Notes: generated from the sequence alone by a model not told the origin. Shown: positions 1 to 45,457, counted from the stretch's first letter. The stretch: DNA of 64,000 nt from Macrostomum lignano (GCA_002269645.1 NIVC01001375.1:186001-250000), one strand, 5' to 3'. A program made the numbers and translations.

Positions 1-289
1 TAAAGCAGCTCTGCATTATGCATACGAAGTTGATTCCCGATGAGTTGGAGACCAGACCACATCAAACAGAGTGCGGTCATGCCAGGGAGGTCAAATCCCA
101 ATTCAAGCGAGGACCGAACAGTACAACTCGATGCACGCGAACTGACGAAGTCACTCTTTACTTATCTAAATGAAAAAATCAGCGAGTTCGTTGATCGATG
201 ACTGACAGTTGCGGTCTCGTGTCCTGAGCTGAAACATACTGGGCATACTTTGAGCAGGGTCTGTGTGGATGTTCGTATCTGTCTGCCCT

Positions 290-14390: not shown

Positions 14391-14427
<37 letters not shown>

Positions 14428-14501
14428 TCTGTGTTTGTGTCTGTCTGTCTGTCTGTCTGCCTGTCTGTCTGTCTGTCTGCCTGCCTGTCTGTCTGTCTGC
14501 C

Positions 14502-14542
<41 letters not shown>

Positions 14543-14825
14543 TCTGTGTTTGTGTCTGTCTGTCTGTCTGCCTGCCTGTCTGTCTTCTGTGTTTGTGTCT
14601 GTCTGTCTGTCTGTCTGCCTGTCTGTCTGTCTGTCTGCCTGCCTGTCTGTCTGTCTGTCTGCCTGCCTGTCTGTCTTCTGTGTTTGTGTCTGTCTGTCTG
14701 CCTGCCTGTCTGTCTTCTGTGTTTGTGTCTGTCTGTCTGCCTGCCTGTCTGTCTTCTGTGTTTGTGTCTGTCTGTCTGCCTGTCTGTCTTCTGTGTTTGT
14801 GTCTGTCTGTCTGTCTGTCTGTCTC

Positions 14826-14871
<46 letters not shown>

Positions 14872-17800: not shown

Positions 17801-20800
17801 GGCGTCCCGCTGGCGAGACAGCAGGTTCAGGCCGGGGCCGAACCCGCGGCAGAAGGCCTCCAGGATCAGAGTGAACCGAAGTCGCAGCTGCTGCTGATGG
17901 ATCTCCGACCAGAGGTACCAGAAAAATCGAACTCCAGATCTACGAGTAAGAGTAGGTCAGGAAATAGTTGACAGGTACCGCAACCAAAAATACCCCAAGA
18001 CAGGTACCTCAGCCAAAATACCCCCAAGACAGGTACCTCAACCAAAAAACCCCAAGACAGGTACCTCAACCAAAAAACCCCAAGACAGGTACCTCAACCA
18101 AAATACCCCAAAACAGGTACCTCAACTAAAAAACTCTAAGACAGGCACCTCAACCAACAATACCCCAAAGAAAGGTACCTCAACCAAATTACCCCAAAAC
18201 AGGTACCCCCACCAAAAATACCCCAAAACAGGTACCCCAACCAAAATACCCTAAGACAGGTACCCCCACCAAAAATAACATAAGACAGGTACCCACACCA
18301 AAAATACCCTAAGACAGGTACCCCCATCAAAAATACCCCAAGACAGGTACCCCCACCAAAAATACCCTAAGACAGGTACCCTCACCAAAAATACCCCAAG
18401 ACAGGTACCAAAGTGGCAAAAAACTCACCGGACGCTCCTCAGCGACCATCTCAACAGAAAGTGAGTCAATCTATTGCTAAGAAACGGTTCAAACTTCAAG
18501 CACTGAACCAACTGCAGCAACAGCCTGCGAAACAATTTATCAGTAAGCGACTGATCCAAAGACTCAACGGCCAACGATCTCAGCCGAGGATCCATAAACT
18601 TCGGGCCCAACAATTGCAGACTAGTGTGCAATGGCAACGGTCGCTTCCACTGCTCCAACAGGTAATAGAACTTCAATACGTCATGCCGATTGGCCCAGTT
18701 AACAGCGCTAGCCAGCACTGGCAGCGAGGCCGGGTGCCTGGCGCAGCAGTCCTGCCGATAATACCAAACTAAATCGCGCTCTGAATCTGTCAGTTCGCTC
18801 AGACAGTCTCGATTGAGAATGGATTTCAGCTGGTCCTGCAGCTGCTCCTCTTTATTAGGCGGGATCACATCCCAGCCGGGTCGATTGCTTGACGGAGTCA
18901 ATGGCGACTGCTGCAGCATAGAGTTCAGGCTGTCCTTGTCGGGGAAGCACAGCCGGGACTCGGGGAACATCACCTGCGTAGGGCATTGGGTGTTGGGAAT
19001 TGGCAAAGTGTTGGATTGCTTACTCTGAGAATGTTGGTTTCTGATCCTCATTCACCACCTTCTCCCCTGTGTAACCGCTCTTGCCTAACTCTCCCCTTGC
19101 CTACCTCTCCCCTTGCCTACCCTCTCCCCTTGCCTACCTCTCCCCTTGCCTACCCTCTCCCCTTGCCTACCTCTCCCCTTGCCTACCTCTCCCCTTGCCT
19201 ACCCTCTCCCCTTGCCTAACCTCTCTCCCTTTGCCTACCCTCTCTCCCTTTATCTACCCTCTCTCCCTTTATCTACCCTCTCTTCCTTTATCTACCCTCT
19301 CTCTCTTTATCTACCCTCTCTCTCCCTTTATCTACTCTCTCTCCCTTTATCTACCCTCTCTCTCCCTTTATCTACCCTCTCTTCCTTTATCTACCCTCTC
19401 TCCCTTTATCTACCCTCTCTCCCTTTATCTACCCTCTCTCCCTTTATCTACCCTCTCTCCCTTTATCTACCCTCTCTCCCTTTATCTACCCTCTCTCCCT
19501 TTATCTACCCTCTCTCCCTTTATGTACCCTCTCTCCCTTTATGTACCCTCTCTCCCTTTATCTACCCTCTGTCCCTTTATCTACCCTCTCTCCCTTTATC
19601 TACCCTCTCTCCCTTTTTCTACCCTCTCTCCCTTTATCTACCCTCTCTCCCTTTATCTACCCTCTCTCCCTTTATCTACCCTCTCTCCATTTATCTACCC
19701 TCTCTCCCTTTATCTACCCTCTCTCCCTTTATCTACCCTCTCTCCCTTTATCTACCCTCTCTCCCTTTATGTACCCTCTCTCCCTTTATCTACCCTCTGT
19801 CCCTTTATCTACCCTCTCTCCCTTTATCTACCCTCTCTCCCTTTATCTACCCTCTCTCCCTTTATCTACCCTCTCTCCCTTTATCTACCCTCTCTCCATT
19901 TATCTACCCTCTCTCCCTTTATCTACCCTCTCTCCCCTTGTCCACGCTCTATCCCCATGTCTACCCTAGGCGCTCCGCAGCCTCCTAAGCCCCAATAACG
20001 CAGCAGCAGCAGCAGCGGAGGCGGGCTCACCTCAGCCACCGGAGCGTCGCTCTGATTACTACCAAACGTGGTGCCCAACGGTTTAAGAAAGTCAACAGCC
20101 CCAGCCGAGGATTGCTGGCCAACTCCGCCAAGAAACTCTTCAGTCCAGAATCGCATTTGAATCGGTCCGCTACGCAATTTGCCATCGTAGGCAAATATGT
20201 TAACGTTGCTCCAGCCTAGACAGTTGTGCTCGTCAGTCGTGTGACGCCGGACAACATAGCACAGGGCTAAGCACAGCCTGGCGTATATTGGCAAATTCGA
20301 TACTAATACGTCGAACATCAGTGGCTCGCTAATGCTCTCAGCATTGCAACTGCGCATAGCTCTAGTGGTTAGATTGCCGCACAGCGGGGCGCTGCCGCAG
20401 TAGATGCCGGCTCTCAGGTACAGCTGACCGTTGGGGGGGTCGGACACTTGGACGCTGGTTACCTGGGGGGAGGAGAAATGAAGGTCAGACAGTGAGCTGA
20501 AATACCTGAAGCATAGATACGGCGATTTAACATGTATATAAGGGAAATAAGGGAATGAGTGGGTGACGGGAGGCAGAAGAAACCGAGAGGGAGAGGTAGA
20601 TGGAGAGAGGGGAGATAGGGAGAGGGAGATGGGGAAAGGAGATGGGGAGAGGAGAGGGAGATGAGGAGAGGGAGATGGGGAGAGGGAGATGGGGAGAGGA
20701 GAGGGAGAAAGGGAGATGGGGAGAGGAGAGGGAGATGAGGAGAGGGAGATGGGGAGAGGGGAGATAGGGAGAGGGAGATGGGGAAAGGGAGATGGGGAGA

Positions 20801-23105
20801 GGGAGATGGGGAAGGGAGATGGGGAGAGGAGAGGGAGATGGGGAGAGGGAGAGATGGGGAGAGGACGATAGGGATATGAGGAGAGGGAGATGAGGAGAGG
20901 GAGATGGGGAGAGGGAGATGGGGAGAGGGAGAGATGGGGAGAGGAGGATAGGAAGATGGGGAGAGGGAGATGGCGAGAGGGAGATGGGGAGAGGAGAGGG
21001 AGATGAGGAGAGGGAGATGGGGAGAGGGAGATGAGGAGAGGGAGATGGGGAGAGGGAGAGGAGGAGAGGGAGATGAGGAGGAGGAGAGGGAGATGAGAAG
21101 AGGGAGACAGGGAGACTGAGAGGGAGAGGGGAGAAAAGAAGAGGGAGAGTGGGAGGGCAAGGGCGAGAGAGGGGACACAGAGCCGTAGCAGACAGAGCGG
21201 CAGCCAACAGAGGGACACACATGAACAGTGAAGTATTCGTTAACGCAATTCCACAGATCCATAGGCCGGGCCAAGGCGGGCTGACTCAGCGAATCCTCGC
21301 GCACCATGGCATACGATGAAGACGTAGAAGTCCTATCGGAGGCGGCCAGGTTGCTGAGGTATTCTGGCATCGAATAGAAATTGCAGCAGCCGGGCTCGCT
21401 GACGCTGTCAAAGCTGGCGTCCTTCTCAACCAGCATGAGACAGGGAGTGACATTGGAGTCCAAGCAGTGCCGGAAATAATCGTACGAACTGAGAGGCGAC
21501 CGCGATGTTAAATACTGATTGCAGCAGCACACCTTGACCAGGTAGCGATTGGGATTAATCTGCTGACGCGACTGAGGCTTGCGGGCGACCTCTTCTACTA
21601 CAGTTGAAGGATAGCTGTGGTCCAGGTCCAGCTGAATAGTGAATCGCATTGTCTGATTGCCACTGCGGTGAAATACCTGCACCTTGTGAATACTGCTTGG
21701 ACTGATGGCGGGGCCGGTGAATGACAATCTGTCAGATGAATTGTTCGAAGCGCTGGCACTGCTGGTGCTGCTCTTGTGCCGAATAATTGGGCTAGTATCC
21801 TCGCAAGTGGCCCCGGTGCGAAAGTGGAACACCTGTTGATATAAATAATCAATTCAGTGTTAGAAATTTACAGGAATTTAAACAAACCATTGCGTATTCT
21901 AAGAAACGGGAATTCCGAAAATGAAAAGACAGTAGCATAATTATTAACTTAGTAGCTTGAAAATAGGGAAATCCTAAACAGGGAAATCCTAAACAAGAAG
22001 ATTCAGAGTACCGGTAAGGAAATCCAAGAGGGAAACCCCAAACAAGGGGATTCACAGTAGGAAAATCCTAAACAAGGGGATTCACAGTAGGGAAATCCCA
22101 AACAGGGAAATCTTAAACAAGGAGATTCAGACTACCGGCAGGGATATAGCGACAAGGGGATTCACAGTAGGGAAATCCCAAACAAAAAGATTCACATTAG
22201 GGAAATACTAAATAAGGAGAGTCACAGTAGGGAAATCCCAAAACAGGGAAACCACAAACAAGGTTACAGTAGGGAAATCTCAAGCAAGGAGAGTCACAGT
22301 AGGGAAATCCCAAGCAAGGAGAGTCACAGTAGGGAAATCCCAAGCAAGGAGTGTCACAGTAGGGAAATCTCAAACAAGGAGTCTCAGTAGGGAAATCCCA
22401 AACAAGGAGTCACAGTAGGGAAATCCCAAGCAAGGAGAGTCACAGTAGGGAAATCTCAAACAAGGAGTCTCAGTAGGGAAATCCCAAACAAGGAGTCACA
22501 GTGGGGAAATCCCAAGCAAGGAGAGTCACAGTAGGGAAATTCCAAACAAGGAGTCACAGTAGAGAAATCCCAAACAAGGGGTCACAGTAGGGAAATCCCA
22601 AGGGAAACCCTACAAAACTGCAAGAATAGCAACCGCCGCTAATCATTCCCACCTGGTCGGCGCCGCCATTCCTAGTCTGCTGGCAGGCGTCTTTCACGGT
22701 GGCAAAAGCGGCCCCACGAAAACTGGTAGCCTCGGCGTCCATGACTCGGCCGAGATCCTTGGCGGACACGCCGATCGAATGAAACACCAACGCTTCCCTA
22801 GTTTTGTCGCTTTTCATATCGTGACTCTGACGTAGGCTGAGCATTGGTATAAACAATCTCAATTGGCTCAACCGTTGCGTCTCTTCTAGGAAATCCTCCG
22901 TGGACCCCTCCAGAATTACGCCGCTAAATACGTAACTATCCTGGTCGAGCGATTCCGAATAATACCCGGCCTTGTGCGCCTCCGACCAGACCAGCTTCTT
23001 TAAATCGCACAGCGGCACATCGGCCGAACAGGTGAGCACCAGCAGGAAGCCAGAGGGCAGCAGGACGTCAACGTCCACGCTGCCGCCTAGTAGTGCGCCG
23101 GACAT
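13838..23105 (-). CDS. PIK3CA: Class IA phosphatidylinositol 3-kinase catalytic subunit p110 (alpha-like), 8 exons, about 1089 aa
   Basis: Exons 23105-22653 (ABD), 21832-21221 (RBD), 20462-20031 (C2: [15 protein letters not shown]), 18973-18429 (helical), 17939-17642, 15976-15722 ([24 protein letters not shown]), 15269-14940 ([30 protein letters not shown]), 14182-13838 (WTTKIDW). Total 3270 nt, in frame. The alpha versus beta/delta assignment is tentative. Confidence 0.93.
14220..14890. repeat. (TGTC)n-based compound microsatellite, PI3K intron 7
   Basis: Visible repeat with TTCTGTGTTTGTG interruptions. Confidence 0.97.
15405..15670. repeat. 25-bp minisatellite, PI3K intron 6
   Basis: Unit AAATTATCCCATTCGAGAAATCCCA. 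Confidence 0.92.
16015..17640. repeat. 28-bp minisatellite with a 560-bp higher-order repeat, PI3K intron 5
   Basis: Unit GGCTGGCCCAGCAACTGAGGATCTGAGA. ORFs 16258-16572 and 16818-17132 have identical translations at a 560-bp offset. Confidence 0.97.
17970..18412. repeat. 28-29-bp minisatellite, PI3K intron 4
   Basis: Unit AAGACAGGTACCTCAACCAAAATACCCC. Confidence 0.93.
19085..19965. repeat. 19-bp CT-rich minisatellite, PI3K intron 3
   Basis: Unit CCCTCTCTCCCTTTATCTA. Confidence 0.95.
20585..21175. repeat. GA-rich minisatellite (GGGGAGAGGGAGAT), PI3K intron 2
   Basis: Visible purine tract. Confidence 0.93.
21960..22605. repeat. About 28-30-bp minisatellite, PI3K intron 1
   Basis: Unit CACAGTAGGGAAATCCCAAACAAGGAGT. 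Confidence 0.93.
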
Positions 23106-24401: not shown

Positions 24402-27400
24402 TCAGTAATCTCCAGAAGCGGCAGCGGCAGCGGCAGCAGCCCGCCGACGGAATCGCGTCTCATTGGGATCAAATCCCTGTTCAGCGGAGCCGTACACAGC
24501 CCACTCTGGCGTCTCGGCCATATAATCGGCCGCATTGAACCGTTGGCCAGTTTCCACAAATCGTCCATAGAGCTGCTCAAATCTATCGTAATCAATCCAG
24601 GTGTGCCAACGATTGTTAACTAGAAATTTGCGTTTATTAGCCAATAGGACGCAGTTGGAGTGCTCGTGCTCACAGGCGATGTCGTACTGATTGGCCAGAG
24701 AGTCGGCCAAAGCCTGGCTGAACTGCACCACCTCCTTGTGCCAGGGCACGTTGCCCATTGTCAGCTGGCTGGCCTTGCTATCGCCGCAGAATGTCACTCC
24801 TTTCACTTCGATGAAATCTGGGCAGCCGAGATCCACTAGCTTAGCGTATTGTTGCACCTTGATTAGCGGATGGGGGAGGGAGCTTATTGTGGCTGGGGGA
24901 TTATTATCCCAATTTTGATCTACAAAAAGTGTCCCTAAAAACCTTTAAAAAAATATCCCAATTCCCAAATAGTTAAATTTCTATACTGAAACATGAGGGA
25001 TAATTATCCCTTACTCAAATATCTCAGGCGACAATTATCCCCCCTACTAAAATATATTGGGATAATTATCCCCCTACTGAAATTTTGCAGGGGATAATTA
25101 TCCTTCCTACTGAAATATCTCAGGGGATAATTATCCTTCCTACTGAAATATCTCAGGGGATAATTATCTCAGTGGATAATTATCCTTCCTACTGAAATAT
25201 CTCAGGGGATAATTATCCTTCCTACTGAAATATCTCAGGGGATAATTATCCTTCCTACTGAAATATCTCAGGGGATAATTATCCTTCCTACTGAAATATC
25301 TCAGGGGATAATTATCCTTCCTACTGAAATATCTCAGGGGATAATTATCCTTCCTACTGAAATATCTCAGGGGATAATTATCCTTCCTACTGAAATATCT
25401 CAGTGGATAATTATCCTTCCTACTGAAATATCTCAGGGGATAATTATCCTTCCTACTGAAATATCTCAGGGGATAATTATCCTTCCTACTGAAATATCTC
25501 AGTGGATAATTATCCTTCCTACTGAAATATCTCAGGGGATAATTATCCTTCCTACTGAAATATCTCAGGGGATAATTATCCTTCCTATTGAAATATCTCA
25601 GTGGATAATTATCCTTCCTACTGAAATATCTCAGGGGATAATTATCCTTCCTACTGAAATATCTCAGAGGATAATTATCCTTCCTACTGAAATATCTCAG
25701 GGGATAATTATCCTTCCTACTGAAATATCTCAGGGGATAATTATCCTTCCTACTGAAATATCTCAGTGGATAATTATCCTTCCTACTGAAATATCTCAGG
25801 GGATAATTATCCTTCCTACTGAAATATCTCAGGGGATAATTATCCTTCCTACTGAAATATCTCAGTGGATAATTATCCTTCCTACTGATATATCTCAGTG
25901 GATAATTATCCTTCCTACTGAAATATCTCAGGGGATAATTATCCTTCCTACTGAAATATCTCAGGGGATAATTATCCTTCCTACTGAAATATCTTAGTGG
26001 ATAATTATCCTACCTACTGAAATATCTCAGGGGATAATTATCCTTCCTACTGAAATATCTCAGTGGATAATTATCCTTCCTACTGAAATATCTCAGGGGA
26101 TAATTATCATACATGCGCAACTTTGGGATTCACTCGGCCGTTTCTATTGGCAACAAACGCATGTAAGTCGCTATTGGACAGAACAGTAGTCACGTGACTG
26201 CTCTCAGCCAATAGCGACTTACATGCGTGTGTTGCCAATAGAAACGGCCGGGTGAATCCCAAGGTTGCGCCCAAGCATGATAATTATCCTTCCTACTGAA
26301 ATATCTCAGGGGATAATTATCCTTCCTACTGAAATATCTCAGGGGATAATTATCCTTCCTACTGAAATATCTCAGTGGATAATTATCCTTCCTACTGAAA
26401 TATCTCAGGGGATAATTATCCTTCCTACTGAAATATCTCAGGGGATAATTATCCTTCCTACTGAAATATCTCAGTGGATAATTATCCTTCCTACTGAAAT
26501 ATCTCAGGGATAATTATCCTTCCTACTGAAATATCTCAGGGGATAATTATCCTTCCTACTGAAATATCTCAGTGGATAATTATCCTTCCTACTGAAATAT
26601 CTCAGTGGATAATTATCCTTCCTACTGAAATATCTCAGGGGATAATTATCCTTCCTACTGAAATATCTCAGGGGATAATTATCCTTCCTACTGAAATATC
26701 TCAGGGGATAATTATCCTTCCTACTGAAATATCTCAGGGGATAATTATCCTTCCTACTGAAATATCTCAGGGGATAATTATCCTGCCTACTGAAATATCT
26801 CAGGGGATAATTTTCCTTCCTACTGAAATATCTCAGGGGATAATTATCCTTCCTACTGAAATATCTCAGTGGATAATTATCCTTCCTACTGAAATATCTC
26901 AGGGGATAATTATCCTTCCTACTGAAATATCTCAGTGGATAATTATCCTTCCTACTGAAATATCTCAGGAGATAATTATCCTTCCTACTGAAATATCTCA
27001 GGGGATAATTATCCTTCCTACTGAAATATCTCAGGGGATAATTATCCTTCCTACTGAAATATCTCAGGGGATAATTATCCTTCCTACTGAAATATCTCAG
27101 GGATAATTATCCTTCCTACTGAAATATCTCAGGGGATAATTATCCTTCCTACTGAAATATCTTAGTGGATAATTATCCTACCTACTGAAATATCTCAGGG
27201 GATAATTATCCTTCCTACTGAAATATCTCAGTGGATAATTATCCTTCCTACTGAAATATCTCAGGGGATAATTATCCTGCCTACTGAAATATCTCAGGGG
27301 ATAATTATCCTTCCTACTGAAATATCTCAGGGGATAATTATCCTTCCTATTGAAATATCTCAGTGGATAATTATCCTTCCTACTGAAATATCTCAGGGGA

Positions 27401-30400
27401 TAATTATCCTTCCTACTGAAATATCTCAGGGGATAATTATCCTTCCTATTGAAATATCTCAGGGGATAATTATCCTTCCTACTGAAATATCTTAGGGGAT
27501 AATTATCCTCCACTAAAATATCTGGGGGGGGGGGTAATTAGCTCCACTTCAAATATCTAGAGGACATTAATTACTAACTAAAATAGAAATCATTCCTAAT
27601 TCTTGGGACAATGATACTCTACCAAAAAAGTATCTCAAGCTCCCCCACAGAGCAACAAACCTTTTCGGTGTTCCAAGCCTTGACCAGAGTCAGCCGGTAC
27701 ACGGTCCGCTGGCCGCAGTCGCGCATAGCCCGCAGGCAATCGATAAAACGCTGCCAGAAATCCTTGAACAGAGGCCTGTCGATGCGTTTCAAGCTATCCG
27801 GCGTGGCTGCGTCAACCGATACGTAAAGTTGCGTAACAGGCGGCAGTTGACGCATCGCTTCGGGGAACTGAGCGTTAGTAACTAGGAACGAAGAGATGCC
27901 GGATGTGTGCAACAGGTGCAACAGCTGGTTGATGCGCGGATACATGATGGGCTCGCCCACTAGGCTGAGTGCGCAATGGCGCGGCTGCATGCCTTCGGAG
28001 ATGCGCTCGGGCATGACGCCGGGCACTCCGCGGAATTCCCGTATCATCCGCCTGCGGCGGGTGGGGTTAGTTTGTAAGGCAATTGTGATTAAGAGCATCT
28101 AAGCCTTCGAGTGAGGATCTCGGAGATACTCTAAGTGGAGCTGATTCTCATTCCTAGATTCTTACTAAGCATATCACAATTCGTTATTGGGATTCCCCTA
28201 GATTCCTCATTGGGATTCCCCTAGATACCCCATTTGGATTCTCTTACAGTCCTTATTGGGATTTCCCTAGATTCCTCATTGGGATTCCCCTAGATCCTTT
28301 ATTCGGATTCTCCTAGATTCCTCATGGGATTCTCCTAGATTCCTTATTGGGATTTCCCTTGATTCCTCATTGGGATTCCGCTAGATTCTTTATTCGGATT
28401 CTCCTAGCTTCCTTATTGGGATTCCCCTAGATTCCTAACTGGATTTCCCTTGATTCCTCATTGGGATTCCCCTAGATTCTTTTCGGATTCTCCTAGATTC
28501 CTTATTGGGATTCCTTTAGATTCTTAATTGGGATTTCCCCAGATTCCCTATTCGGATTCTCCTAGATTCCTTATTGGGATTCCCCTAGATTCCTAATTGG
28601 GATTTCCTTGATTCCTCATTGGCATTCCCCTAGATTCTTTATTCGGATTGTCCTAGATTCCTCATTCGGATGCTCCTAGCTTCCTTTTTAGGATTCCCCT
28701 AGATTCCTCATTGGGATTTCTCCGATATACTAAAAAGGGATACCCCTAGATTTGTAATTGGGATTCCCTTGGATACTAAAAAAGATACCCCCTATAAACC
28801 CCAATAGACCTCCGCCATCGCTCACCTGTGAGCATCCAAAGCGCCAGATAGAATCTCATCGGGCGGATCTTCCAACCAGCGCCACTCGGTGCCCACCGGA
28901 TTAGTGTGATGCCGCCAACAGAACACGCATTTATTGGCACAGGCCAGAGAAGGCGTGGCCTCCATGCACCGGTGCGAGGCGATGCCATAGAATGCGTGCT
29001 TGTAGCAGCCGCCGCGGCCTCGCAGCATGGATTTGGTCCATCGGCACAGCTTGACGCCGGAATGACTGCCAATCAATCGGTAGCCTTGCTTCTCTAACGA
29101 TTTACGAACTAACGGCGTAACCATAGCTCGTCTGGTTGTGGCTTCTTGGCGAAGTTTTTGCTTCTGATTGCTTCTAGTAGCAGACGACAATACACCGCCA
29201 ATATCTTCAACGTCTACTAGGCCGTCTTGATCTTCCTCATCTAGATGATCACTATCAACGTCTGAATGGTCTTCGGCAACATCTGACGCCGCTTCCGCGC
29301 CTTGGCAACAAGCTGAATTGCCGGTAGCCTCTGAACAGCAAGCTGATTTTTTCTTCTTACTAACCAAAGGATCCAACAGTTGAGATTGAAGCGCGGCCTG
29401 AAAGTCGGCCTCTTGACCGCCGTGGCCGGTTGCTGAGGCGACATTTTCGTCTAGCAGAACTGGCGGCCGCAGACGGGTACCGGACAGCTGAGTCAGCTGC
29501 TCGTCAACACGCTTGGCTATCTGACAGTTTTTCGAAGGAAACAAAGGAGGCTCGCTGTGGTGGAGGCCAAGCATTCGGAGATGGAAAAATTGATCAGAGA
29601 GACAGGAAAGGGAAAAGGTGGAGAGGGGAGGCAGAAAAAACGGAGAGAAGGGAGCAAGGGGGAGAGAGCGAGAAAGGGGAAGAGAGAGAAGGCGAGAGAG
29701 AGGGAGAGAAAGAAAGAAAGGGGGTGAGAGAGAGGGAGGCGGATGGGCGGGAGAGAGGAGAGGGCGAGAGAGGGAAAGGAGAGGGGGGGAGGGGGGAGGG
29801 GAAGAGGGTGAGAGAGAGGGGAAGGAAACGGAAAAAGGGTGGGAGAGGGGCTGAAAGAGAGAGAGAGAGAGAGAGGGGAAGGGAGAAGGAAGAGGGGTAA
29901 GAGGGACAGAGAGAGAGAGAGAGACGCAAGGGGGCTAGAGGGGAGGGAGGGAGAGCGAGAGAGGGGAATGGAGAGGGGAGGGAGGGAGAGCGAGAGAGGG
30001 GAATGGAGAGGGGAGGGAGGGAGAGCGAGAGAGGGGAATGGAGAAGGGAGGGAGGGAGAGCGAGAGAGGGGAATGGAGAAGGAAGGGAGAGCGAGAGAGG
30101 GGAATGGAGAGGGGAGGCCGGGAGGGAGGGAGAGCGACAGAAAGAAAGTGAAGGGGAAGAAGAAAAATAAAAAAGCCTCACCAAATTGTAATTCTCAGCG
30201 TAGAGCGAGTTGCCCAGGCCGATGACAATGAACCTCAATCCGCTTAGGTGGCCCCTTTCAACGCGCCAATCTTCGGCCGCTTCGGCCAGCCATTTGCAGA
30301 ACCAGGCGCCGGTATTGGGAGACGAGCCGCCTTCGTAGGTTGGCAACAGAAAGTAGCAGAGGGTGTCGGGAGACTGGGAACGGTCAGGGGGTTAAATTGA

Positions 30401-33400
30401 ATGAGAAGTGCATTTCGATAATGGATTACCAATTTCGATATCGAAATCCGATAATCCAATATCAAAATCTGATAATCCAATATCAAAATCCGATAATCCA
30501 ATATCAAAATCTGATAATCCAATATCAAAATCCGGTAATCCAATATCAAAATCCGATAATCCAATATCAAAATCCGGTAATCCAATATCAAAATCCGATA
30601 ATCCAATATCAAAATCCGATAATCCAATATCAAAATCCGGTAATCCAATATCAAAATCCGATAATCCAATATCAAAATCCGATAATCCAATATCAAAATC
30701 CGATAATCAACTATAAAAAATTGGTAATCCATTATCGAAATGCACTTCTCATTCAATTTAACCCCCTGACCGTTCCCAGTCTCCCGACACCCTCTGCTAC
30801 TTTCTGTTGCCAACCTACGAAGGCGGCTCGTCTCCCAATACCGGCGCCTGGTTCTGCAAATGGCTGGCCGAAGCGGCCGAAGATTGGCGCGTTGAAAGGG
30901 GCCACCTAAGCGGATTGAGGTTCATTGTCATCGGCCTGGGCAACTCGCTCTACGCTGAGAATTACAATTTGGTGAGGCTTTTTTATTTTTCTTCTTCCCC
31001 TTCACTTTCTTTCTGTCGCTCTCCCTCCCTCCCGGCCTCCCCTCTCCATTCCCCTCTCTCGCTCTCCCTTCCTTCTCCATTCCCCTCTCTCGCTCTCCCT
31101 CCCTCCCTTCTCCATTCCCCTCTCTCGCTCTCCCTCCCTCCCCTCTCCATTCCCCTCTCTCGCTCTCCCTCCCTCCCCTCTCCATTCCCCTCTCTCGCTC
31201 TCCCTCCCTCCCCTCTAGCCCCCTTGCGTCTCTCTCTCTCTCTCTGTCCCTCTTGCCCCTCTTCCTTCTCCCTTCCCCTCTCTCTCTCTCTCTCTCTTTC
31301 GGCCCCTCTCCCACCCTTTTTCCGTTTCCTTCCCCTCTCTCTCACCCTCTTCCCCTCCCCCCTCCCCCCTCTCCTTTCCCTCTCTCGCCCTCTCCTCTCT
31401 CCCGCCCATCCGCCTCCCTCTCTCTCACCCCCTTTCTTTCTTTCTCTCCCTCTCTCTCGCCTTCTCTCTCTTCCCCTTTCTCGCTCTCTCCCCCTTGCTC
31501 CCTTCTCTCCGTTTTTTCTGCCTCCCCTCTCCACCTTTTCCCTTTCCTGTCTCTCTGATCAATTTTTCCATCTCCGAATGCTTGGCCTCCACCACAGCGA
31601 GCCTCCTTTGTTTCCTTCGAAAAACTGTCAGATAGCCAAGCGTGTTGACGAGCAGCTGACTCAGCTGTCCGGTACCCGTCTGCGGCCGCCAGTTCTGCTA
31701 GACGAAAATGTCGCCTCAGCAACCGGCCACGGCGGTCAAGAGGCCGACTTTCAGGCCGCGCTTCAATCTCAACTGTTGGATCCTTTGGTTAGTAAGAAGA
31801 AAAAATCAGCTTGCTGTTCAGAGGCTACCGGCAATTCAGCTTGTTGCCAAGGCGCGGAAGCGGCGTCAGATGTTGCCGAAGACCATTCAGACGTTGATAG
31901 TGATCATCTAGATGAGGAAGATCAAGACGGCCTAGTAGACGTTGAAGATATTGGCGGTGTATTGTCGTCTGCTACTAGAAGCAATCAGAAGCAAAAACTT
32001 CGCCAAGAAGCCACAACCAGACGAGCTATGGTTACGCCGTTAGTTCGTAAATCGTTAGAGAAGCAAGGCTACCGATTGATTGGCAGTCATTCCGGCGTCA
32101 AGCTGTGCCGATGGACCAAATCCATGCTGCGAGGCCGCGGCGGCTGCTACAAGCACGCATTCTATGGCATCGCCTCGCACCGGTGCATGGAGGCCACGCC
32201 TTCTCTGGCCTGTGCCAATAAATGCGTGTTCTGTTGGCGGCATCACACTAATCCGGTGGGCACCGAGTGGCGCTGGTTGGAAGATCCGCCCGATGAGATT
32301 CTATCTGGCGCTTTGGATGCTCACAGGTGAGCGATGGCGGAGGTCTATTGGGGTTTATAGGGGGTATCTTTTTTAGTATCCAAGGGAATCCCAATTACAA
32401 ATCTAGGGGTATCCCTTTTTAGTATATCGGAGAAATCCCAATGAGGAATCTAGGGGAATCCTAAAAAGGAAGCTAGGAGCATCCGAATGAGGAATCTAGG
32501 ACAATCCGAATAAAGAATCTAGGGGAATGCCAATGAGGAATCAAGGAAATCCCAATTAGGAATCTAGGGGAATCCCAATAAGGAATCTAGGAGAATCCGA
32601 ATAGGGAATCTGGGGAAATCCCAATTAAGAATCTAAAGGAATCCCAATAAGGAATCTAGGAGAATCCGAAAAGAATCTAGGGGAATCCCAATGAGGAATC
32701 AAGGGAAATCCAGTTAGGAATCTAGGGGAATCCCAATAAGGAAGCTAGGAGAATCCGAATAAAGAATCTAGCGGAATCCCAATGAGGAATCAAGGGAAAT
32801 CCCAATAAGGAATCTAGGAGAATCCCATGAGGAATCTAGGAGAATCCGAATAAAGGATCTAGGGGAATCCCAATGAGGAATCTAGGGAAATCCCAATAAG
32901 GACTGTAAGAGAATCCAAATGGGGTATCTAGGGGAATCCCAATGAGGAATCTTTCCTTGAGGATTTGAGGATTTCCTTGATTCCTCATTGGCATTCCCCT
33001 AGATTCTTTATTCGGATTGTCCTAGATTCCTCATTCGGATGCTCCTAGCTTCCTTTTTAGGATTCCCCTAGATTCCTCATTGGGATTTCTCCGATATACT
33101 AAAAAGGGATACCCCTAGATTTGTAATTGGGATTCCCTTGGATACTAAAAAAGATACCCCCTATAAACCCCAATAGACCTCCGCCATCGCTCACCTGTGA
33201 GCATCCAAAGCGCCAGATAGAATCTCATCGGGCGGATCTTCCAACCAGCGCCACTCGGTGCCCACCGGATTAGTGTGATGCCGCCAACAGAACACGCATT
33301 TATTGGCACAGGCCAGAGAAGGCGTGGCCTCCATGCACCGGTGCGAGGCGATGCCATAGAATGCGTGCTTGTAGCAGCCGCCGCGGCCTCGCAGCATGGA

Positions 33401-36400
33401 TTTGGTCCATCGGCACAGCTTGACGCCGGAATGACTGCCAATCAATCGGTAGCCTTGCTTCTCTAACGATTTACGAACTAACGGCGTAACCATAGCTCGT
33501 CTGGTTGTGGCTTCTTGGCGAAGTTTTTGCTTCTGATTGCTTCTAGTAGCAGACGACAATACACCGCCAATATCTTCAACGTCTACTAGGCCGTCTTGAT
33601 CTTCCTCATCTAGATGATCACTATCAACGTCTGAATGGTCTTCGGCAACATCTGACGCCGCTTCCGCGCCTTGGCAACAAGCTGAATTGCCGGTAGCCTC
33701 TGAACAGCAAGCTGATTTTTTCTTCTTACTAACCAAAGGATCCAACAGTTGAGATTGAAGCGCGGCCTGAAAGTCGGCCTCTTGACCGCCGTGGCCGGTT
33801 GCTGAGGCGACATTTTCGTCTAGCAGAACTGGCGGCCGCAGACGGGTACCGGACAGCTGAGTCAGCTGCTCGTCAACACGCTTGGCTATCTGACAGTTTT
33901 TCGAAGGAAACAAAGGAGGCTCGCTGTGGTGGAGGCCAAGCATTCGGAGATGGAAAAATTGATCAGAGAGACAGGAAAGGGAAAAGGTGGAGAGGGGAGG
34001 CAGAAAAAACGGAGAGAAGGGAGCAAGGGGGAGAGAGCGAGAAAGGGGAAGAGAGAGAAGGCGAGAGAGAGGGAGAGAAAGAAAGAAAGGGGGTGAGAGA
34101 GAGGGAGGCGGATGGGCGGGAGAGAGGAGAGGGCGAGAGAGGGAAAGGAGAGGGGGGGAGGGGGAGGGGAAGAGGGTGAGAGAGAGGGGAAGGAAACGGA
34201 AAAAGGGTGGGAGAGGGGCCGAAAGAGAGAGAGAGAGAGAGAGGGGAAGGGAGAAGGAAGAGGGGTAAGAGGGACAGAGAGAGAGAGAGAGACGCAAGGG
34301 GGCTAGAGGGGAGGGAGGGAGAGCGAGAGAGGGGAATGGAGAGGGGAGGGAGGGAGAGCGAGAGAGGGGAATGGAGAGGGGAGGGAGGGAGAGCGAGAGA
34401 GGGGAATGGAGAAGGGAGGGAGGGAGAGCGAGAGAGGGGAATGGAGAAGGAAGGGAGAGCGAGAGAGGGGAATGGAGAGGGGAGGCCGGGAGGGAGGGAG
34501 AGCGACAGAAAGAAAGTGAAGGGGAAGAAGAAAAATAAAAAAGCCTCACCAAATTGTAATTCTCAGCGTAGAGCGAGTTGCCCAGGCCGATGACAATGAA
34601 CCTCAATCCGCTTAGGTGGCCCCTTTCAACGCGCCAATCTTCGGCCGCTTCGGCCAGCCATTTGCAGAACCAGGCGCCGGTATTGGGAGACGAGCCGCCT
34701 TCGTAGGTTGGCAACAGAAAGTAGCAGAGGGTGTCGGGAGACTGGGAACGGTCAGGGGGTTAAATTGAATGAGAAGTGCATTTCGATAATGGATTACCAA
34801 TTTTTTATAGTTGATTATCGGATTTTGATATTGGATTATCGGATTTTGATATTGGATTATCGGATTTTGATATTGGATTACCGGATTTTGATATTGGATT
34901 ATCGGATTTTGATATTGGATTATCGGATTTTGATATTGGATTACCGGATTTTGATATTGGATTATCGGATTTTGATATTGGATTACCGGATTTTGATATT
35001 GGATTATCAGATTTTGATATTGGATTATCGGATTTTGATATTGGATTATCAGATTTTGATATTGGATTATCGGATTTCGATATCGGATTATCGGATTTTG
35101 ATACTGGATTAACGGATTTTGATATTGGATTACCGGAATCTGATATTGGATTACCGGATTTTGATAATGGATTACCGGATTTCAATATTGGATCATCGGA
35201 TTTTGATATTGGATTACCGGATTTTGATACTGGATTATCGGATTTTGATATTGGATTACCGGATTTTGATATTGGATTATCGGATTTTGATATTGGATTA
35301 TCGGATTTTGATATTGGATTACCGGATTTTGATATTGGATTATCGGATTTTGATATTGGATTACCGGATTTTGATAATGGATTACCGGATTTCAATATTG
35401 GATCATCGGATTTTGATATTGGATTACCGGATTTTGATAATGGATTATCGGTTTTCGATATCGGATTAACGGATTTTGATATTGGATTTTGATATTGGAT
35501 TACCGGATTTTGATATTGGATTATCGGATTTTGATATTGGATTACCGGATTTTGATATTGGATTACCGGATTTTGATATTGGATTACCGGATTTTGATAT
35601 TGGATTACCGGATTTTGATATTGGATTATCGGAGTTTGATATTGGATTATCGGATTTCGATATCGGATTATCGGATTTTGATACTGGATTAACGGATTTT
35701 GATATTGGATTAACCGATTTTGATATTGGATTACCGGATTTTGATATTGGATTACCGGATTTCGATATTGGATCATCGGATTTTGATATTGGATTATCGG
35801 ATTTTGATAATGGATTATCGGAGTTTGATATTGGATTATCGGATTTCGATATCGGATTATCGGATTTTGATACTGGATTAACGGATTTTGATATTGGATT
35901 AACCGATTTTTATATTGGATTAACATGTTAATATTCGATTTGATAAATACTTCAATCTGACTTATTCAACACTGAAGATATTTCTTATAAAGAAATAAAT
36001 AAAAACCCACCTCTTTATGCGGACTCTCCTCTGGATCATAATTAGCCAAATCAATCAATTCAATGCCAGCAGAATCGCTACTACTAACAGTAGTAGATTT
36101 GCACGCCTCACCGTCGCCACCGTTGCAACACTGAGACTGCTGCTGCTGCTGCTTCTGTTGTTTCAACACACCAGCCAGTTCGTCTCGAAGCAGAGTGGCA
36201 AAATGTTTAGCTCTGCCCAGTTGGCTAGCGTAGAACACGCGCACTTTATTAAAGGTCTCGTCAACGCTTCCATTAGCTGTACTTGTGCAACTTGTAGTAG
36301 GCAGCATTGCCTTGCGAGTTGTTGGACTCCTCAACGACATTTGACTACTACTTGAAAGTACCGCTTTCTGTTTGGATGAAAAAACGACAACAAAATTTAT

Positions 36401-36620
36401 GTTATGCTACTAAAAGTAGAAAAGTGAGAATACTTTTTTTGTCTTCTTTAATTAAGATTACCTTGACAGACGACGCGCTAATCACGTGACCTTGACGGCC
36501 GCGACGTTGAAACAAAATCCATGCGCCAACAACAGAAGCAGCCAATAGAAGAGAATAAGAGAGAGCGCTGCTGTTTTGCAGAGCTCGACTAATGTGAACA
36601 GTCAGGTCCCAGTGCGACAT
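24402..36620 (-). CDS. TYW1: tRNA wybutosine-synthesizing protein 1 (N-terminal TM, flavodoxin domain, radical SAM domain), 6 exons, about 749 aa
   Basis: Exons 36620-36462, 36367-36011, 34741-34550 (LPTYEGG..WFCKWL..VIGLGNSLY), 33889-33195 (GYRLIGSHSGVKLCRWTKSMLRGRGGCYKH; CANKCVFC radical-SAM motif), 28051-27661 (HCALSLVGEP, FLVTNAQFP), 24857-24402 (PDFIEVKGVTFCG, HEHSNC). Total 2250 nt, in frame. Exons 3-4 are also available as the copy at 30373-28826. Confidence 0.93.
24995..27515. repeat. 33-bp minisatellite, TYW1 last intron
   Basis: Unit GATAATTATCCTTCCTACTGAAATATCTCAGGG with a palindromic GGATAATTATCC core. Confidence 0.97.
26108..26279. mobile_element. 172-bp palindromic MITE inserted into the 33-bp minisatellite, 8-bp TSD ATAATTAT (hAT-like)
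   Basis: About 66-bp near-perfect inverted arms, CAT...ATG ends, and ATAATTAT at both 26100-26107 and 26280-26287. Confidence 0.85.
28185..28780. repeat. About 23-bp degenerate minisatellite (GGGATTCCCCTAGATTCCTCATT), TYW1 intron 4; copies at 32380-32950 (inverted) and 32970-33150
   Basis: Visible repeat. Confidence 0.9.
28826..30373 (-). CDS. TYW1: Second sense-oriented copy (copy C) of TYW1 exon 3 (30373-30182) and exon 4 (29520-28826)
   Basis: Exon translations are identical to those at 34741-33195 and the splice sites are intact. Confidence 0.85.
30780..32326 (+). pseudogene. TYW1: Inverted copy (copy B) of TYW1 exon 3 (30780-30971) and exon 4 (31632-32326), antisense to the gene
   Basis: Reverse complement of the same block. 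ORF 30807-32330 mirrors 33191-34714 and lacks exons 1-2 and 5-6. Confidence 0.85.
34810..35930. repeat. 21-bp minisatellite, TYW1 intron 2; inverted partial copy at 30445-30710
   Basis: Unit GGATTATCGGATTTTGATATT. Confidence 0.96.
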
Positions 36621-37167
36621 TTTGCTTGCTGATTGCTGGAATTCAATATAGGCAATGCTTAACACTTTATAATAAGCTATTAAACTTGCTTTATATAGTA
36701 CTTACTAAGTAGGTCAAGCCTATAAAAAGTAAATGCGCATTTAAATTCTATAACAAAATAGCAATGAACTTAGCACACATCACCTAGAAAAATCATAGCC
36801 GAATCTAAAGATTAGACTAATGATGAAATGAAAAAAATCAAAACTGATTGTAGCATGGCTAGAATTAAATCAATTAGCAATTGACTAAGTTATAAGTCTA
36901 ATCTTGGAATTATCAGAGTTTATATGCAATTCAACTTGTCCTTTGTTGTTTTTGACAATTTTTTACCTTTTCACTATTTATCAACCATCAAATTAACATT
37001 AATTTTTGTTTATTACTGTCTTGAAAAAGTAGTATCATTTCTTTTTATATTAAAAAAGTGCAAAAAGCCCATATTTCTCTTTGCTACAAGGTGTGAAACT
37101 ATTTTCAACTGTCAGCAAGAGTAACAGCAATTGATTTATATCATAGCAACTTTACTTACTAATGATA

Positions 37168-37725
37168 CAGTGAAAGAATTTTGAAAATATCACAAACTTA
37201 TCAAAAGTTATGTCTCCTTAACTGCAGTGGGGTACTGCATCTCAACAGGAACTGGAACTAGACTACAATTTTGAAATCTCACAGAAATTAACCAAATTCG
37301 AAATTGTTTGAAAAATCTCTAGCATGATATTGTGTCATCAAAGTGTCATCACTTTCTATATCTATGGTACAAGTTTCATTTGCTTCTGCTTGTGTGGCAC
37401 TCTGAAACTGAGGGGCAGAGTTCATGCCAATTGTGACTGCCTTGAGCAGGAAGTGCAGCAGGTTCTTGTCTACACAGACGTCATTGACAACATGCTTACA
37501 TGGTGGAAGAAATGCATCCAACTAAAGGGTGACTATATTGAGAAGGTCTCAGTTGCCACTGAGGAAGACATTTAAACTTTTTTGAAATAGAACTGACTTA
37601 CTGTTTTCTGGTGCTTCATATGCAGCATCCTAGTTCCTGTTTATGTATTGAGATGCAGTACCCCACTGCAGTTAGGATGCATAACTTTTGATAAGTTTGT
37701 GATATTTTCAAAATTCATTCAACTT
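37168..37725 (+). mobile_element. Non-autonomous Tc1/mariner-derived element with about 90-bp inverted repeats
   Basis: Inverted repeats at 37168-37261 and 37629-37725, TA on both flanks, left end TA|CAGTG. The internal ORF ends in WKKCIQLKGDYIEK, the mariner transposase C-terminal motif. Confidence 0.65.
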
Positions 37726-38279
37726 TACATTTACAAGTAAAATTTGCTTTCACCCCATCATTCCTATATCAGTTTAACTGTGGGGTTGTTGGTGTGGCTT
37801 GATTCATGGGGTTTGGTTAAGAGGGAGAGAAATGGCTTGTCCAATAAAAGTGGATATAAAGAAAGTTGGACACATACAAAGTGCCAATGTACATTGGTAG
37901 ATCACCCTTCTCTTCTTCACTCTAGCTCTAGCTAGCTTTATTTCTAAACTCTAGTCTTGCCAAAAAGCTTCTAGTCCAGCCAAAGATTTTAAATAAAACA
38001 AAACAACCCTTCATATTTCTTTATTTCTTCATTTCACCTCCTTTCTACAATACATCATATAATATATCTGCCAGCACTGCATTTTTGTAATAAGTCTTAT
38101 TCATAGAATGTTTGGAAGACTGGAAAAAATTTGAAAATCACCAGACTTAAATATGTAATACTAATAGCAATGAATAGCAATACACTGACTTTCATTTGCT
38201 TATTATAGTAAATCTATATTATTCCTCTTATTTGTAGACTATGGTTTCCATAGCAAAAGCACATAGTAGATATAGAGCA

Positions 38280-38693
38280 TTGAGTGTTCAACCCTGCATG
38301 GACTCAACAATACTTTTTTGTCAACTTCAATAGGAAGGCATAGTGCTTTATCTGAATGGCAACTGTTGCAGTCTTCAAAGAAGCCAAGGTACACTGCCAC
38401 TGGGAGTCTGTACACAAGATATCCAAGTATGTAAAGATAGACAATGCTTCTTAACAGTGTTATTATTAGGCTGACTATATAGCATATCTAGCAGACCAAC
38501 AGCTTTGTCTATCAAAAGCTTGGTACAACTTTCATAGAAAAAGCCACCCATGCATTTTTTGAGGTGTCACTTTTCATTGCTAAAAAGATAAAGCCATTTA
38601 CCAATGGAGACTTTATCAAAGAGTGTTTATTAGCAACTACCAATCTTATGTGCCCTGATTAGCAATCCACTTTTTCCTTTATTAGCCTCTAAT
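38280..38693 (+). mobile_element. hAT (Charlie/SPIN, GTF2IRD2-like) transposase N-terminal relic with stops
   Basis: Reads RVFNPAWTQQYFFV..CFI*MATVAVFKEAKVHCHWESVH and, further on, SLFIAKKIKPFTNGDFIKECLLATTNLMCPD*QSTFSFISL, matching the zinc-finger and KPFTxGEFIKEC motifs of this family. Confidence 0.75.
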
Positions 38694-39117
38694 GAATTTC
38701 AAATAGTGTCTGCAGGTCCTTAACCTTATTGTAATAAATTTTGAAAATGCAGGGACATGCATCAAGGGTCTAGCAAAAATGTGCCAAGGGGTCACTCTCC
38801 AAGATACATGGGCCATATCAAGGGACTATAGTTGCAACAATAAAAGACCCTTTTGTAGTTGCAACAATAAAGAACCTTTTTGCAGTCACAACTTTTTTGC
38901 AGTTTGAATATTAAAAATGTAAGCTTTGATTAAAACTAAACTAATGATACCTATTTATAGCTACTGAAAAAGTTTAGATTTTCAATAACTTGTAGATATA
39001 TTCAACTACATATGTCTAGAAAAACCACTTCTATATTTAATCCTCTTATCATAAATATATATTTCATAAAACTACTTTATGTCAATCTGTTATTGTCATA
39101 CAAGTTTGTTTTACATT

Positions 39118-42150: not shown

Positions 42151-43722
42151 GGGAGACCCAGTTAAAACCACATGTTTATTAGCTATAATAAACTAAAACA
42201 AGGTATTAAAATGTATTACAAACACAAGACGGTATCAAACCATAAACAGCGTTAATATAATCTTATGTAGTTTTGCTAATAATTAATCCTATATACTAAA
42301 AATGAAAAGCTTGCTTGCTTGCTTTAATTAATTAAAATTCTAAAATTTGTACCAACGGGTACTTCTCTTCACTAGGCCGAAATTTCACATTGCCAAAAAA
42401 TCATTTTAGCAGCTTCTTTCACTAGGCCGATACTTCACATTGCCGAAATGGCTAGCAAGCTATTTAATAAGTTTCGCCTGTTTCGGCCTAGTGAAAAAGA
42501 CTGCTTTTTCGGCGTTGTGAAATTTCGGCCCCATTAGAGTGTGCTAGCTACTTTGGCAATGTGAAGTTTCAGCCTAGTGAAGTTTTGGCCAAGAGAAAGA
42601 GAGTACTTTCCGGCGAAGTGAAATTTCGGCCGCCCGCATCCTCGGATAACGGGGCGCTTTCACTACTCAAGACTCAGCAATTGTACAAGGACGAAGAAGC
42701 TACGTCGCTGGGAAAATTTTAGGAGGCATATGCTTTTTCGAAAAAAAATTACAGAGATGGATCGAGGTTTAGATTAAATCATTTTGAATTAATTACAAGA
42801 AGCAATTATATGATGACTGATCTGTACTATGTTGTTCGAAAATCGACTTTACAAGTCTATCTGGACACAATCTAGCGGCTTAACTGTGAATCTGGTTTAG
42901 GTCGTTTCGTTAAAAAATTGTTATGTAGTGATCAATAAGATTACAACGCGTTATATTATATTTTTTGTACATGTATTTGACATATTTTTGCGTATTTTTC
43001 TTATATCTATAAGTTAGAGTCTAGAAAACCAACTAGATTTTCCGTTCTCCGTTCATCGAGTACTAGTAGGTTTCGTTATTGCTACTTGTAGTAGCCAAAG
43101 CATTGCTGCTTATCAATTACATGTATATATGTAGGCTCCAACCTGGCGTATCCCTTTAAACCTAACGCCTAGATCGTTCCATAAGAATTCTTTAGTTACC
43201 TTAAGCTGCTTAGAATATAAGCTGCAACCCGGCCTTGCCTGGTCAAGATCTAGAGCGCTTTTTCTTAGTCTGACAAAAGTTAAGTCGTTGGCGGCACTTC
43301 ATACGAGCGTATTCATGACAAATTTATCGATTTTTTAGATTTTATATACGTTATTTTGTTTCAGTCCAGCCAAGTACATATACACGCAATATAAATATAC
43401 TGGAGCGGTATATATTACATGTGAGATTACTAACTTTTCTACTAGCTGCAACTGCAAGTACAACTGCAATACTCAACAAAATATAAGATTTGGTGAGTGG
43501 TCATTTCGATCTTTATACATGCACAATATTGTATAGTGCAGGCGGGTTTCAATTAATAATACATTGCAACGTACACTTCAGTTATCGATTAGCCTTTTCG
43601 GACACTGAAAAAACCAAGGCCAATCTCAAAGCAAAAAAGTAACGAAATGGAAATCGAAACGCGAAAAAACTGAAAGCATGAAACGAGAACCTAAGGTGAG
43701 AAAGCGACGGTAAGAGTTTACG

Positions 43723-44811: not shown

Positions 44812-45457
44812 CGGAAATGGGATCCTATCCAAGAAAGACTAAAGTTTACTGAGTGAAATTTTACATGTATATGAAATTTCTCCGAGCACTGTATCAAAAC
44901 CTTGTCGTTTGTGGTTTGAATGAGGTGTTCAACCTCCGCTCCTCCGTGGCATCCTCCGCGATGTTGATGCAGGCTGTTGCCACAAGCTTTTGTTGATTCT
45001 GGCCATCTGTATTTTGCTGAATTTCAAAACAGCTATACATGTACGTCGTCTATTTTTTGTTTAATCAGTTTTCTTTCTTTTTCTTTTTATAATGTTTTAA
45101 AGGCTTTCTTTTGCTGGTAATTATGGTTTTACGTTACGCATGTATACTCGTCTTATATGTACAAACACCCCATACCATCGGGATTTTCATTTCAAGCCAT
45201 TTAAATTCATTAAACGGTTTCAAAATTGCTCGGTTCGAAAATTCAAGTTGCAGATTCTGATCGGATAGACGTGTTGGAAAAGCAAGACTTTTCATATGTA
45301 CTATCCAGTGTGTCTCGTTATCAGTCCGGATTGCAGATGTTGCAGTGCCCGGTCCCTAAATTCCCGATTACTAAATTCTGAACTCTCTAGAATTTTGGAG
45401 GATTTAAGTTAGACATTTAATTGTTGCATGTGTGTAGGTACCCACATGTGGGTCTAT

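Follow-up and report, generated by a model that had tools for sequence, protein, structure and literature searches.

A putative recent inverted triplication of exons 3 and 4 in one of three TYW1 copies of Macrostomum lignano

Introduction

Part of the gene TYW1 is present three times, in alternating orientation, on contig NIVC01001375.1 of the Macrostomum lignano assembly Mlig_3_7 (GCA_002269645.1), which raises the question of whether the repetition records an event in the genome or a fault in its assembly. The stretch of DNA analysed here (64,000 nucleotides, hereafter the window) matches that contig with 100% identity over 32,231 bp; adding 186000 to a window position gives the contig position, and the triplicated block corresponds to NIVC01001375.1:214200−221085. 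A first-pass annotation of the window, made by inspection of the sequence, had proposed a very recent DUP-TRP/INV-DUP (an inverted triplication flanked by duplications) of TYW1 exons 3 and 4, generated by replication template switching between short inverted repeats inside an otherwise intact gene. We regard it as moderately probable that the structure is real, an inverted triplication of DUP-TRP/INV-DUP type that arose very recently in one of three TYW1 homeologues of the M. lignano DV1 line. The evidence for this reading, and for the alternatives to it, is set out below.

Results

The repeated block is part of TYW1

Minus-strand open reading frames (ORFs) in the region of the block are pieces of TYW1, a tRNA-modification gene. 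When joined, they matched BOX15_Mlig019280g1 of M. lignano at 99% in a protein search, and the product shares 55–60% identity with annotated metazoan TYW1 over 97–99% of the query. Three TYW1-defining Pfam domains occur in this one protein, each scoring above its gathering cut-off (Flavodoxin_1, PF00258, 3.7e-14; Radical_SAM, PF04055, 4.7e-14; Wyosine_form, PF08608, 1.4e-24), which places it as a tRNA 4-demethylwyosine synthase. A six-exon model rebuilt with canonical GT-AG introns, taking exons 3 and 4 from the copy that comes first in transcript order (copy A; table 1), translates exactly to the annotated 753-aa protein PAA68710.1, and the repeated block therefore contains exons 3 and 4. The introns are mostly minisatellite, with periods of 21 bp (between exons 2 and 3), 35 bp (exons 3 and 4), 23 bp (exons 4 and 5) and 33 bp (exons 5 and 6).

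Geometry of the block

A repeat scan of 26–38 kb together with self-BLAST aligned copy C with inverted copy B (28200–30435 against 32952–30718) at 99.87% identity over 2236 bp. Self-BLAST likewise aligned B with A in inverted orientation (30436–32555 against 35085–32965) at 99.81% over 2121 bp, and C with A directly (28597–30435 against 32965–34803) at 99.84% over 1840 bp. The middle copy, B, has gene sense on the + strand, hence it is antisense inside the TYW1 transcript; it runs from a piece of the 21-bp array through exon 3, the 35-bp array intron and exon 4 into the 23-bp array, which is the full ancestral order. A three-way alignment yielded an assembled copy-number profile of 1-2-3-2-1, with 28200–28599 (400 bp) and 34804–35085 (282 bp) present twice and a core of 1836 bp present three times. 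With its triplicated middle inverted, the assembled sequence has the DUP-TRP/INV-DUP configuration. The first-pass annotation was accurate here on three counts: the gene and exons involved, now backed by Pfam domains, homologues and the exact protein model; the copies and coordinates of the sense–inverted–sense block, to the base, by repeat scan, self-BLAST and three-way alignment; and the overall geometry, by the profile and the inversion of B.

The window has no other inverted repeats that reach 250 bp and 95% identity, and none of that length and identity was found in two paralogous TYW1 loci (approx. 58 kb); chance is therefore excluded. All four breakpoints lie inside minisatellites, the equivalents of 28200 and 28600 falling in the 23-bp array (28179–28768) and those of 34803 and 35085 in the 21-bp array (34780–35922). 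Both ‘DUP’ segments consist of array units alone, in register with the period of their array. An equally valid description is that of a 2517-bp inverted triplication with contracted arrays in its outer arms beside the turns.

The rearrangement is private to one of three TYW1 loci

The two paralogous loci, L002 (NIVC01000381.1) and L003 (NIVC01000013.1), are those of the two other members of the protein's 90% cluster from the same assembly. Both carry an intact TYW1 copy and the rearrangement is absent from both. Across the three TYW1 loci of the assembly the exons are 97.5–100% identical, and the number of loci fits the three subgenomes described for M. lignano, a neopolyploid (PMC10733133). 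L003 is the more diverged single-copy paralogue, with introns approx. 91% identical. In contrast, L002 is collinear with the window at 99.0–99.8% over most of the shared locus and at approx. 98% further downstream, with the exception of its 33-bp intron array, which is approx. 5 kb longer than that of the window. It holds the 2517-bp unit once, aligned end to end and collinear with B at 99.76% identity (six mismatches, no gaps), and B therefore preserves the ancestral contiguous order. As the unit is single in so similar a locus, the rearrangement is, on this sequence comparison, derived, young and private to NIVC01001375.1, postdating the split from L002. The recency claimed in the first-pass annotation is thus upheld by the absence of the structure from L002 despite the 99.76% match to B.

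The comparison with L002 also bears on one way of making such a structure by misassembly. At unit positions 401 and 867, where the contig (L001) differs from L002, all three copies carry the contig's own allele (C at 401, G at 867); position 401 lies in exon 3, which differs from L002 at that one base. The structure is therefore not a mixture of two haplotypes, and a chimera of L001 and L002 is rejected.

Divergence between L001 and L002 is uneven, at 0.16% over exons 1–4 and the 21-bp array (32969–39117) versus 0.9–2% upstream and downstream, a pattern that hints at recent gene conversion or recombination between the two loci near the rearranged block. The TYW1 coding sequence has only four aligned mismatches against L002, plus a K/E change in the unaligned final 4 nt of exon 5. 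Relative to both paralogues, two residue changes are private to the copy in the window: ESPHKE versus ESLHKE in exon 2 (36011–36030) and NTEKV versus NTEEV at the end of exon 5 (27661–27670). These could reflect relaxed constraint or residual consensus error.

Differences among the three copies

Exons 3 and 4 are identical base for base in A, B and C, so the identical exon translations noted in the first-pass annotation hold at the nucleotide level. The copies differ at four positions in total, all within 116 bp (29783–29898 in C coordinates) of a CT/GA-rich intronic stretch adjoining the 35-bp minisatellite. One A/G substitution is private to B and a second sets C apart from A and B; both had been quoted in the first-pass annotation as among a few intronic differences, to which we add two sites where C-runs are of unequal length (C5/C6/C7). 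Each copy has at least one private variant, the two substitutions included. The C-run differences look like consensus noise, while the substitutions could be real mutations, polymorphism or mis-polishing. L003 was unusable as an outgroup for the two substitutions, the stretch being deleted there.

Junctions and breakpoint arrays

At the first junction, J1, the first eight bases of copy B are a native palindrome, CGATATCG, belonging to a variant unit of the 21-bp array (35078–35085 in copy A). Only six 8-nt palindromes exist in this 1143-bp array, the one at the start of B among them. Together with the final four bases of C (ATTT), this one forms the centre of a perfect palindrome of 16 nt, ATTTCGATATCGAAAT. 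The C arm terminates in the degenerate first unit of the 21-bp array and has 274–282 bp fewer than B, equivalent to approx. 13 array units, in register. The J1 string (junction k-mer GGATTACCAATTTCGATATCGAAATCCGATA) was found solely in contig NIVC01001375.1.

The second junction, J2 (junction k-mer GAGGAATCTTTCCTTGAGGATTTGAGGATTTCC), is of a different kind. B ends one unit inside the 23-bp array, and the inserted TTCCTTGAGGATTTGA is unique in the window, reading as two partial tandem copies of a neighbouring native 12-mer, GGATTTCCTTGA. Folding across J2 gives a 21-bp stem with a 27-nt loop (z = −4.7). The A arm has approx. 409 bp fewer than B, equivalent to approx. 18 array units, and resumes in the same unit phase, in register. 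Templated stutter insertions occur at junctions formed by microhomology-mediated break-induced replication (MMBIR) or by polymerase theta. That the insertion is a structured stutter of an adjacent 12-mer, and not random sequence, counts in favour of a real event.

Units of the breakpoint arrays match their own reverse complement at 12 of 21 and 12 of 23 positions (approx. 55%), and as single-stranded DNA the arrays fold no better than shuffles (z = +0.67 and +0.86). The idea of a quasi-palindromic seed is not supported past the single CGATATCG unit: of the earlier description of the breakpoints as lying in quasi-palindromic minisatellites, the minisatellite location stands and the quasi-palindromic character does not. 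Nor is template switching between short inverted repeats, which had been given as established, visible at the junctions, with 0 bp of microhomology at J1, a 16-nt insertion at J2, no pre-existing inverted repeat of at least 250 bp and arrays that are not hairpin-prone; the CGATATCG palindrome is its sole hint.

The 33-bp array of intron 5 (25165–27523; approx. 15800–21500 in L002) is strongly hairpin-prone (z = −6.2; none of 200 shuffles folded as well). No other array of TYW1 is clearly hairpin-prone, yet no breakpoint falls in this one.

Real rearrangement or assembly artefact

The strongest competing explanation is that the locus is single-copy, as in L002, and that a chimeric long read (a double in vitro polymerase strand switch), or a pair of fold-back reads, was built into a Canu contig, after which polishing by Pilon with one shared set of short reads made all three copies nearly identical. 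We attach a substantial minority of the probability to this explanation. The history of the assembly makes it credible. Mlig_3_7 was built with Canu 1.4 (errorRate 0.04) from approx. 130x PacBio continuous long reads (CLR; SRX1063031), scaffolded with SSPACE and polished with Pilon only, with no Quiver/Arrow step; REAPR found 872 errors of fragment coverage distribution (FCD) inside contigs and just 64% of bases error-free (PMC5730564). Errors in the representation of copy number were noted independently by later work (PMC10733133), and palindromic chimeras are a documented class of long-read artefact (bioRxiv 10.1101/173872).

Beyond this documented error rate, several observations weigh against a real event. 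The structure is seen in a single assembly and in just one of two near-identical contigs. All of the differences between copies sit in one stretch of low complexity, the kind of sequence in which polishing works least well, and two of the four are homopolymer lengths, which are typical of consensus error; the near-complete identity of the copies is equally expected of a single locus represented three times. Tandem-array units are all that is absent from the outer arms; assemblers often collapse such units, and the ‘missing’ ones could have been lost in this way. Finally, 19% of simulated random inverted junctions in the array gave palindrome arms of at least 8 nt (p ~0.19). The J1 palindrome is therefore suggestive of a palindrome-driven turn and falls short of proof; as statistical evidence for such a switch it is not significant and was set aside.

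ORFs spanning J1 and J2 and the predicted exon 4-to-exon 3 frameshift peptide had no match at E ≤ 10 among 5.8 billion proteins, a result made uninformative by the fact that the non-junction parts were likewise unmatched. An exon 3–4 peptide search for odd or split gene models from the older ML2 assembly returned no M. lignano entries. The sole ML2-derived protein (P0123, UniRef A0A1I8HU76) is of the L003 type and comes without genomic context.

The simpler routes to an artefact can be discarded. A read with a missed SMRTbell adapter predicts a symmetric fold-back with the 45-nt adapter between the arms. The best local alignments of an adapter query scored 6.5 and 7.5 at the two junctions, under the random mean for the window (8.7–8.9), indicating no adapter remnant at either. 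Moreover, neither turn is symmetric (offsets of 282 and 400 bp) and unique sequence runs on at both sides, a misfit to a multi-pass read of this kind. A false inverted overlap through the arrays is rejected in view of their 12/21 and 12/23 self-complementarity, which is far under what such an overlap needs at a 4% error rate, their positive folding z-scores and the fact that no array in sense orientation precedes J1 in C. Once these two routes and haplotype mixing are removed, the artefact left to consider is a rare read carrying two strand switches. At approx. 130x coverage, many normal spanning reads should contradict such a read, and no other structure of this type was present in the approx. 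120 kb of Mlig_3_7 examined. A real event is favoured because there is no simple artefact route, because the J2 insertion is structured and because one turn lies at a palindrome; on balance, we judge it rather more probable that the event is real than that it is artefactual.

A possible origin

If the rearrangement is real, replication or break repair would have switched strands twice, copying a 2.5-kb segment with exons 3 and 4 first in inverted and then in direct orientation. One switch may have turned at the 8-nt palindrome inside the 21-bp intronic minisatellite, and the other may have closed with a short templated ‘stutter’ insertion resembling MMBIR or polymerase-theta end joining. The outer arms would have been shortened relative to the middle copy by whole array units, whether at the time of the rearrangement itself or through contraction of the arrays afterwards; the latter would enlarge the spacers (282 and 416 nt) and could thereby stabilize the palindromes. 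In human DUP-TRP/INV-DUP, most junctions are blunt or share 0–4 bp of homology, and palindromic junctions undergo secondary widening (PMC10766186). Small inverted triplications cluster near microsatellites (PMC13334657).

A stricter mechanism is origin-dependent inverted-repeat amplification (ODIRA), in which leading-to-lagging template switches would have occurred at two pre-existing short inverted repeats flanking an origin, seeded here by quasi-palindromic units. In its favour, the structure is an interstitial inverted triplication, the J1 turn falls at a native 8-nt palindrome, and secondary widening of ODIRA junctions is documented (PMC10766186), but we consider it improbable. J1 has no overlap and J2 carries a 16-nt insertion, the spacers of 282 and 416 nt compare with 40–80 bp in primary ODIRA junctions (PMC10766186), and at the position equivalent to 28200 there is no short inverted repeat past the tetranucleotide CTAG. 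The breakpoint arrays are not prone to form hairpins, and a replication origin within a 2.5-kb amplicon is unlikely. The assembled junctions are already without retained inverted-repeat arms: rather than short arms with a 40–80-bp spacer at both junctions, J1 is a 4+4-nt palindrome with no spacer.

Predicted consequences for the transcript

The order of elements in the transcript is exon 1, exon 2, exons 3 and 4 of copy A, antisense B, exons 3 and 4 of copy C, exon 5 and exon 6. Exons 3 and 4 together measure 887 nt, which is 2 mod 3, and default splicing of exon 4 of A to exon 3 of C therefore shifts the frame, with a stop predicted 43 codons later. Given that tandem inclusion causes a frameshift, the description of the gene as otherwise intact was overstated. 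A normal mRNA from the rearranged copy would require that one exon pair is skipped, by splicing exon 2 to exon 3 of C or exon 4 of A to exon 5. The pre-mRNA would hold near-perfect inverted repeats of 2.1–2.2 kb, in which B has two possible partners, A, giving arms of 2117 nt and a 416-nt loop, and C, giving arms of 2236 nt and a 282-nt loop; either pairing would presumably loop out one copy, favour the normal splice and create a long double-stranded RNA. Loss of the rearranged copy should be tolerated because the two other TYW1 copies are intact, and a genome with three subgenomes tolerates damage in one copy (PMC10733133).

A more speculative consequence, which we consider very unlikely, is that the locus, if real and transcribed, acts as an endogenous hairpin-RNA locus: its near-perfect 2.1–2.2-kb inverted exonic repeats would give rise to small RNAs that could silence all three TYW1 copies. 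Were that so, a replication error could lead in one step to dominant-negative silencing, or to homeologue loss as a neopolyploid rediploidizes.

Neighbouring features of the window

Directly downstream of TYW1 lies a class I PI3K catalytic-subunit gene (approx. 14402–23100, − strand) with the annotated Pfam domains PI3K_p85B, PI3K_rbd, PI3K_C2, PI3Ka and PI3_PI4_kinase; the TYW1–PI3K synteny is common to all three paralogous loci. On the + strand, three tandem segments (43215–44972, 48807–50151 and 54046–55706) are 89–95% identical and approx. 5.5 kb apart. A 362-aa single-exon ORF in one of them (43723–44811) has a PCIF1_WW domain (PF12237, E = 1e-28), and the segments look like a local PCIF1/CAPAM-like gene family. 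Minisatellites are very dense, with 48 Tandem Repeats Finder (TRF) rows in the 64 kb (for example 278–4519, 16019–17640 and 45457–47234), including a 4.2-kb CT-rich array of 20-bp period at the left end. This density matches the repeat-rich genome described for M. lignano, and is itself a reason to distrust assembly and polishing in the window.

Table 1. Window coordinates of the three copies, their junctions and the exons of TYW1.
Feature	Position	Strand	Remarks
Copy C, sense with gene	28200..30435	−	400 bp of 23-bp array + 1836-bp core; leads leftward into exon 5
Junction J1 (30435/30436)	30432..30447	.	blunt, 0 bp microhomology with either parent, no insertion
Copy B, inverted middle, longest (2517 bp)	30436..32952	+	repeat scan, self-BLAST, L002 collinearity
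Junction J2	32953..32968	.	16-nt insertion TTCCTTGAGGATTTGA between B end (equivalent of 28200) and A start (equivalent of 28600)
Copy A, sense with gene	32969..35085	−	core + 282 bp of 21-bp array; leads rightward through array to exon 2
TYW1 gene (BOX15_Mlig019280g1 / PAA68710.1)	24402..36632	−	six exons, rebuilt model
TYW1 exon 1	36632–36462	−	rebuilt model
TYW1 exon 2	36367–36011	−	rebuilt model
TYW1 exon 3, copy A	34741–34550 (192 nt)	−	rebuilt model
TYW1 exon 4, copy A	33889–33195 (695 nt)	−	rebuilt model
TYW1 exon 3, copy C	30373–30182	−	repeat copy
TYW1 exon 4, copy C	29520–28826	−	repeat copy
TYW1 exon 5	28051–27661	−	rebuilt model
TYW1 exon 6	24857–24402	−	rebuilt model

Discussion

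If the structure at TYW1 is real, it offers a natural, compact and completely sequenced case of kilobase-scale intragenic inverted triplication in an animal germ line, with both junctions resolved and a nearly identical unrearranged sister copy to serve as the ‘before’ state. It would inform how rearrangements start at simple repeats and how array contraction stabilizes palindromic junctions, and would illustrate one way of disabling a homeologue early after genome duplication. If it is artefactual instead, it represents a concrete misassembly, open to checking, within an annotated gene of the Macrostomum community reference.

That artefact has a counterpart in palindromic chimeric long reads, whether from missed SMRTbell adapters or as palindromes of whole-genome amplification (the Pacasus paper, bioRxiv 10.1101/173872), with which the locus shares a sense–antisense(–sense) layout, near-complete identity between arms and an origin in a CLR assembly. 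It is unlike them in having no adapter between the arms, asymmetric turns, unique flanks on both sides and two junctions in one path.

Among biological systems, yeast ODIRA (SUL1, GAP1; Brewer et al., PMC4689423, PMC10766183) also produces interstitial inverted triplications, and one turn at TYW1 is at a short palindrome. The enlarged spacers resemble those of the 5–10% of yeast ODIRA junctions that are secondarily rearranged (PMC10766186). Primary ODIRA junctions, however, keep two inverted-repeat arms 40–80 bp apart, whereas J1 has only its 4+4-nt palindrome and J2 an insertion, and no selection for amplification is evident at the M. lignano locus. Small inverted triplications (SITs) of FEN1/rad27-deficient cells (Lei et al. 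2026, PMC13334657) are similar in their DUP/IN/DUP arrangement with spacers, their position near simple repeats and their hairpin-prone product. SITs are about ten times smaller, with medians of 148/160/148 bp, 30-bp spacers and 6-bp reverse-complementary junctions, as against segments of approx. 2.2/2.5/2.1 kb, spacers of 282/416 nt and 0 bp of junction homology here, which sets the TYW1 structure outside that class.

The closest likeness is to human DUP-TRP/INV-DUP (MECP2, PLP1; Carvalho et al. 2011; Grochowski et al. 2024, PMC11293582), with the same 1-2-3-2-1 profile, inverted middle and two opposite-strand junctions; 0 bp of homology or a small insertion is also what most human cases show at their junctions (PMC10766186). 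The M. lignano block, seen only in an assembly, is approx. 100–1000 times smaller (TRP 1.84 kb; DUP 0.28 and 0.40 kb). The classical MECP2/PLP1 form departs from a pre-existing pair of inverted low-copy repeats, and no such pair (at least 250 bp, at least 95% identity) occurs in L002 or L003. Unlike the human cases, the structure at TYW1 lies wholly within one gene and its ‘DUP’ parts are purely in-register minisatellite units. The finding extends the known DUP-TRP/INV-DUP class at an intermediate scale and opens no new kind; what is unusual about it is the make-up of the two duplicated flanks, minisatellite units in register with their arrays.

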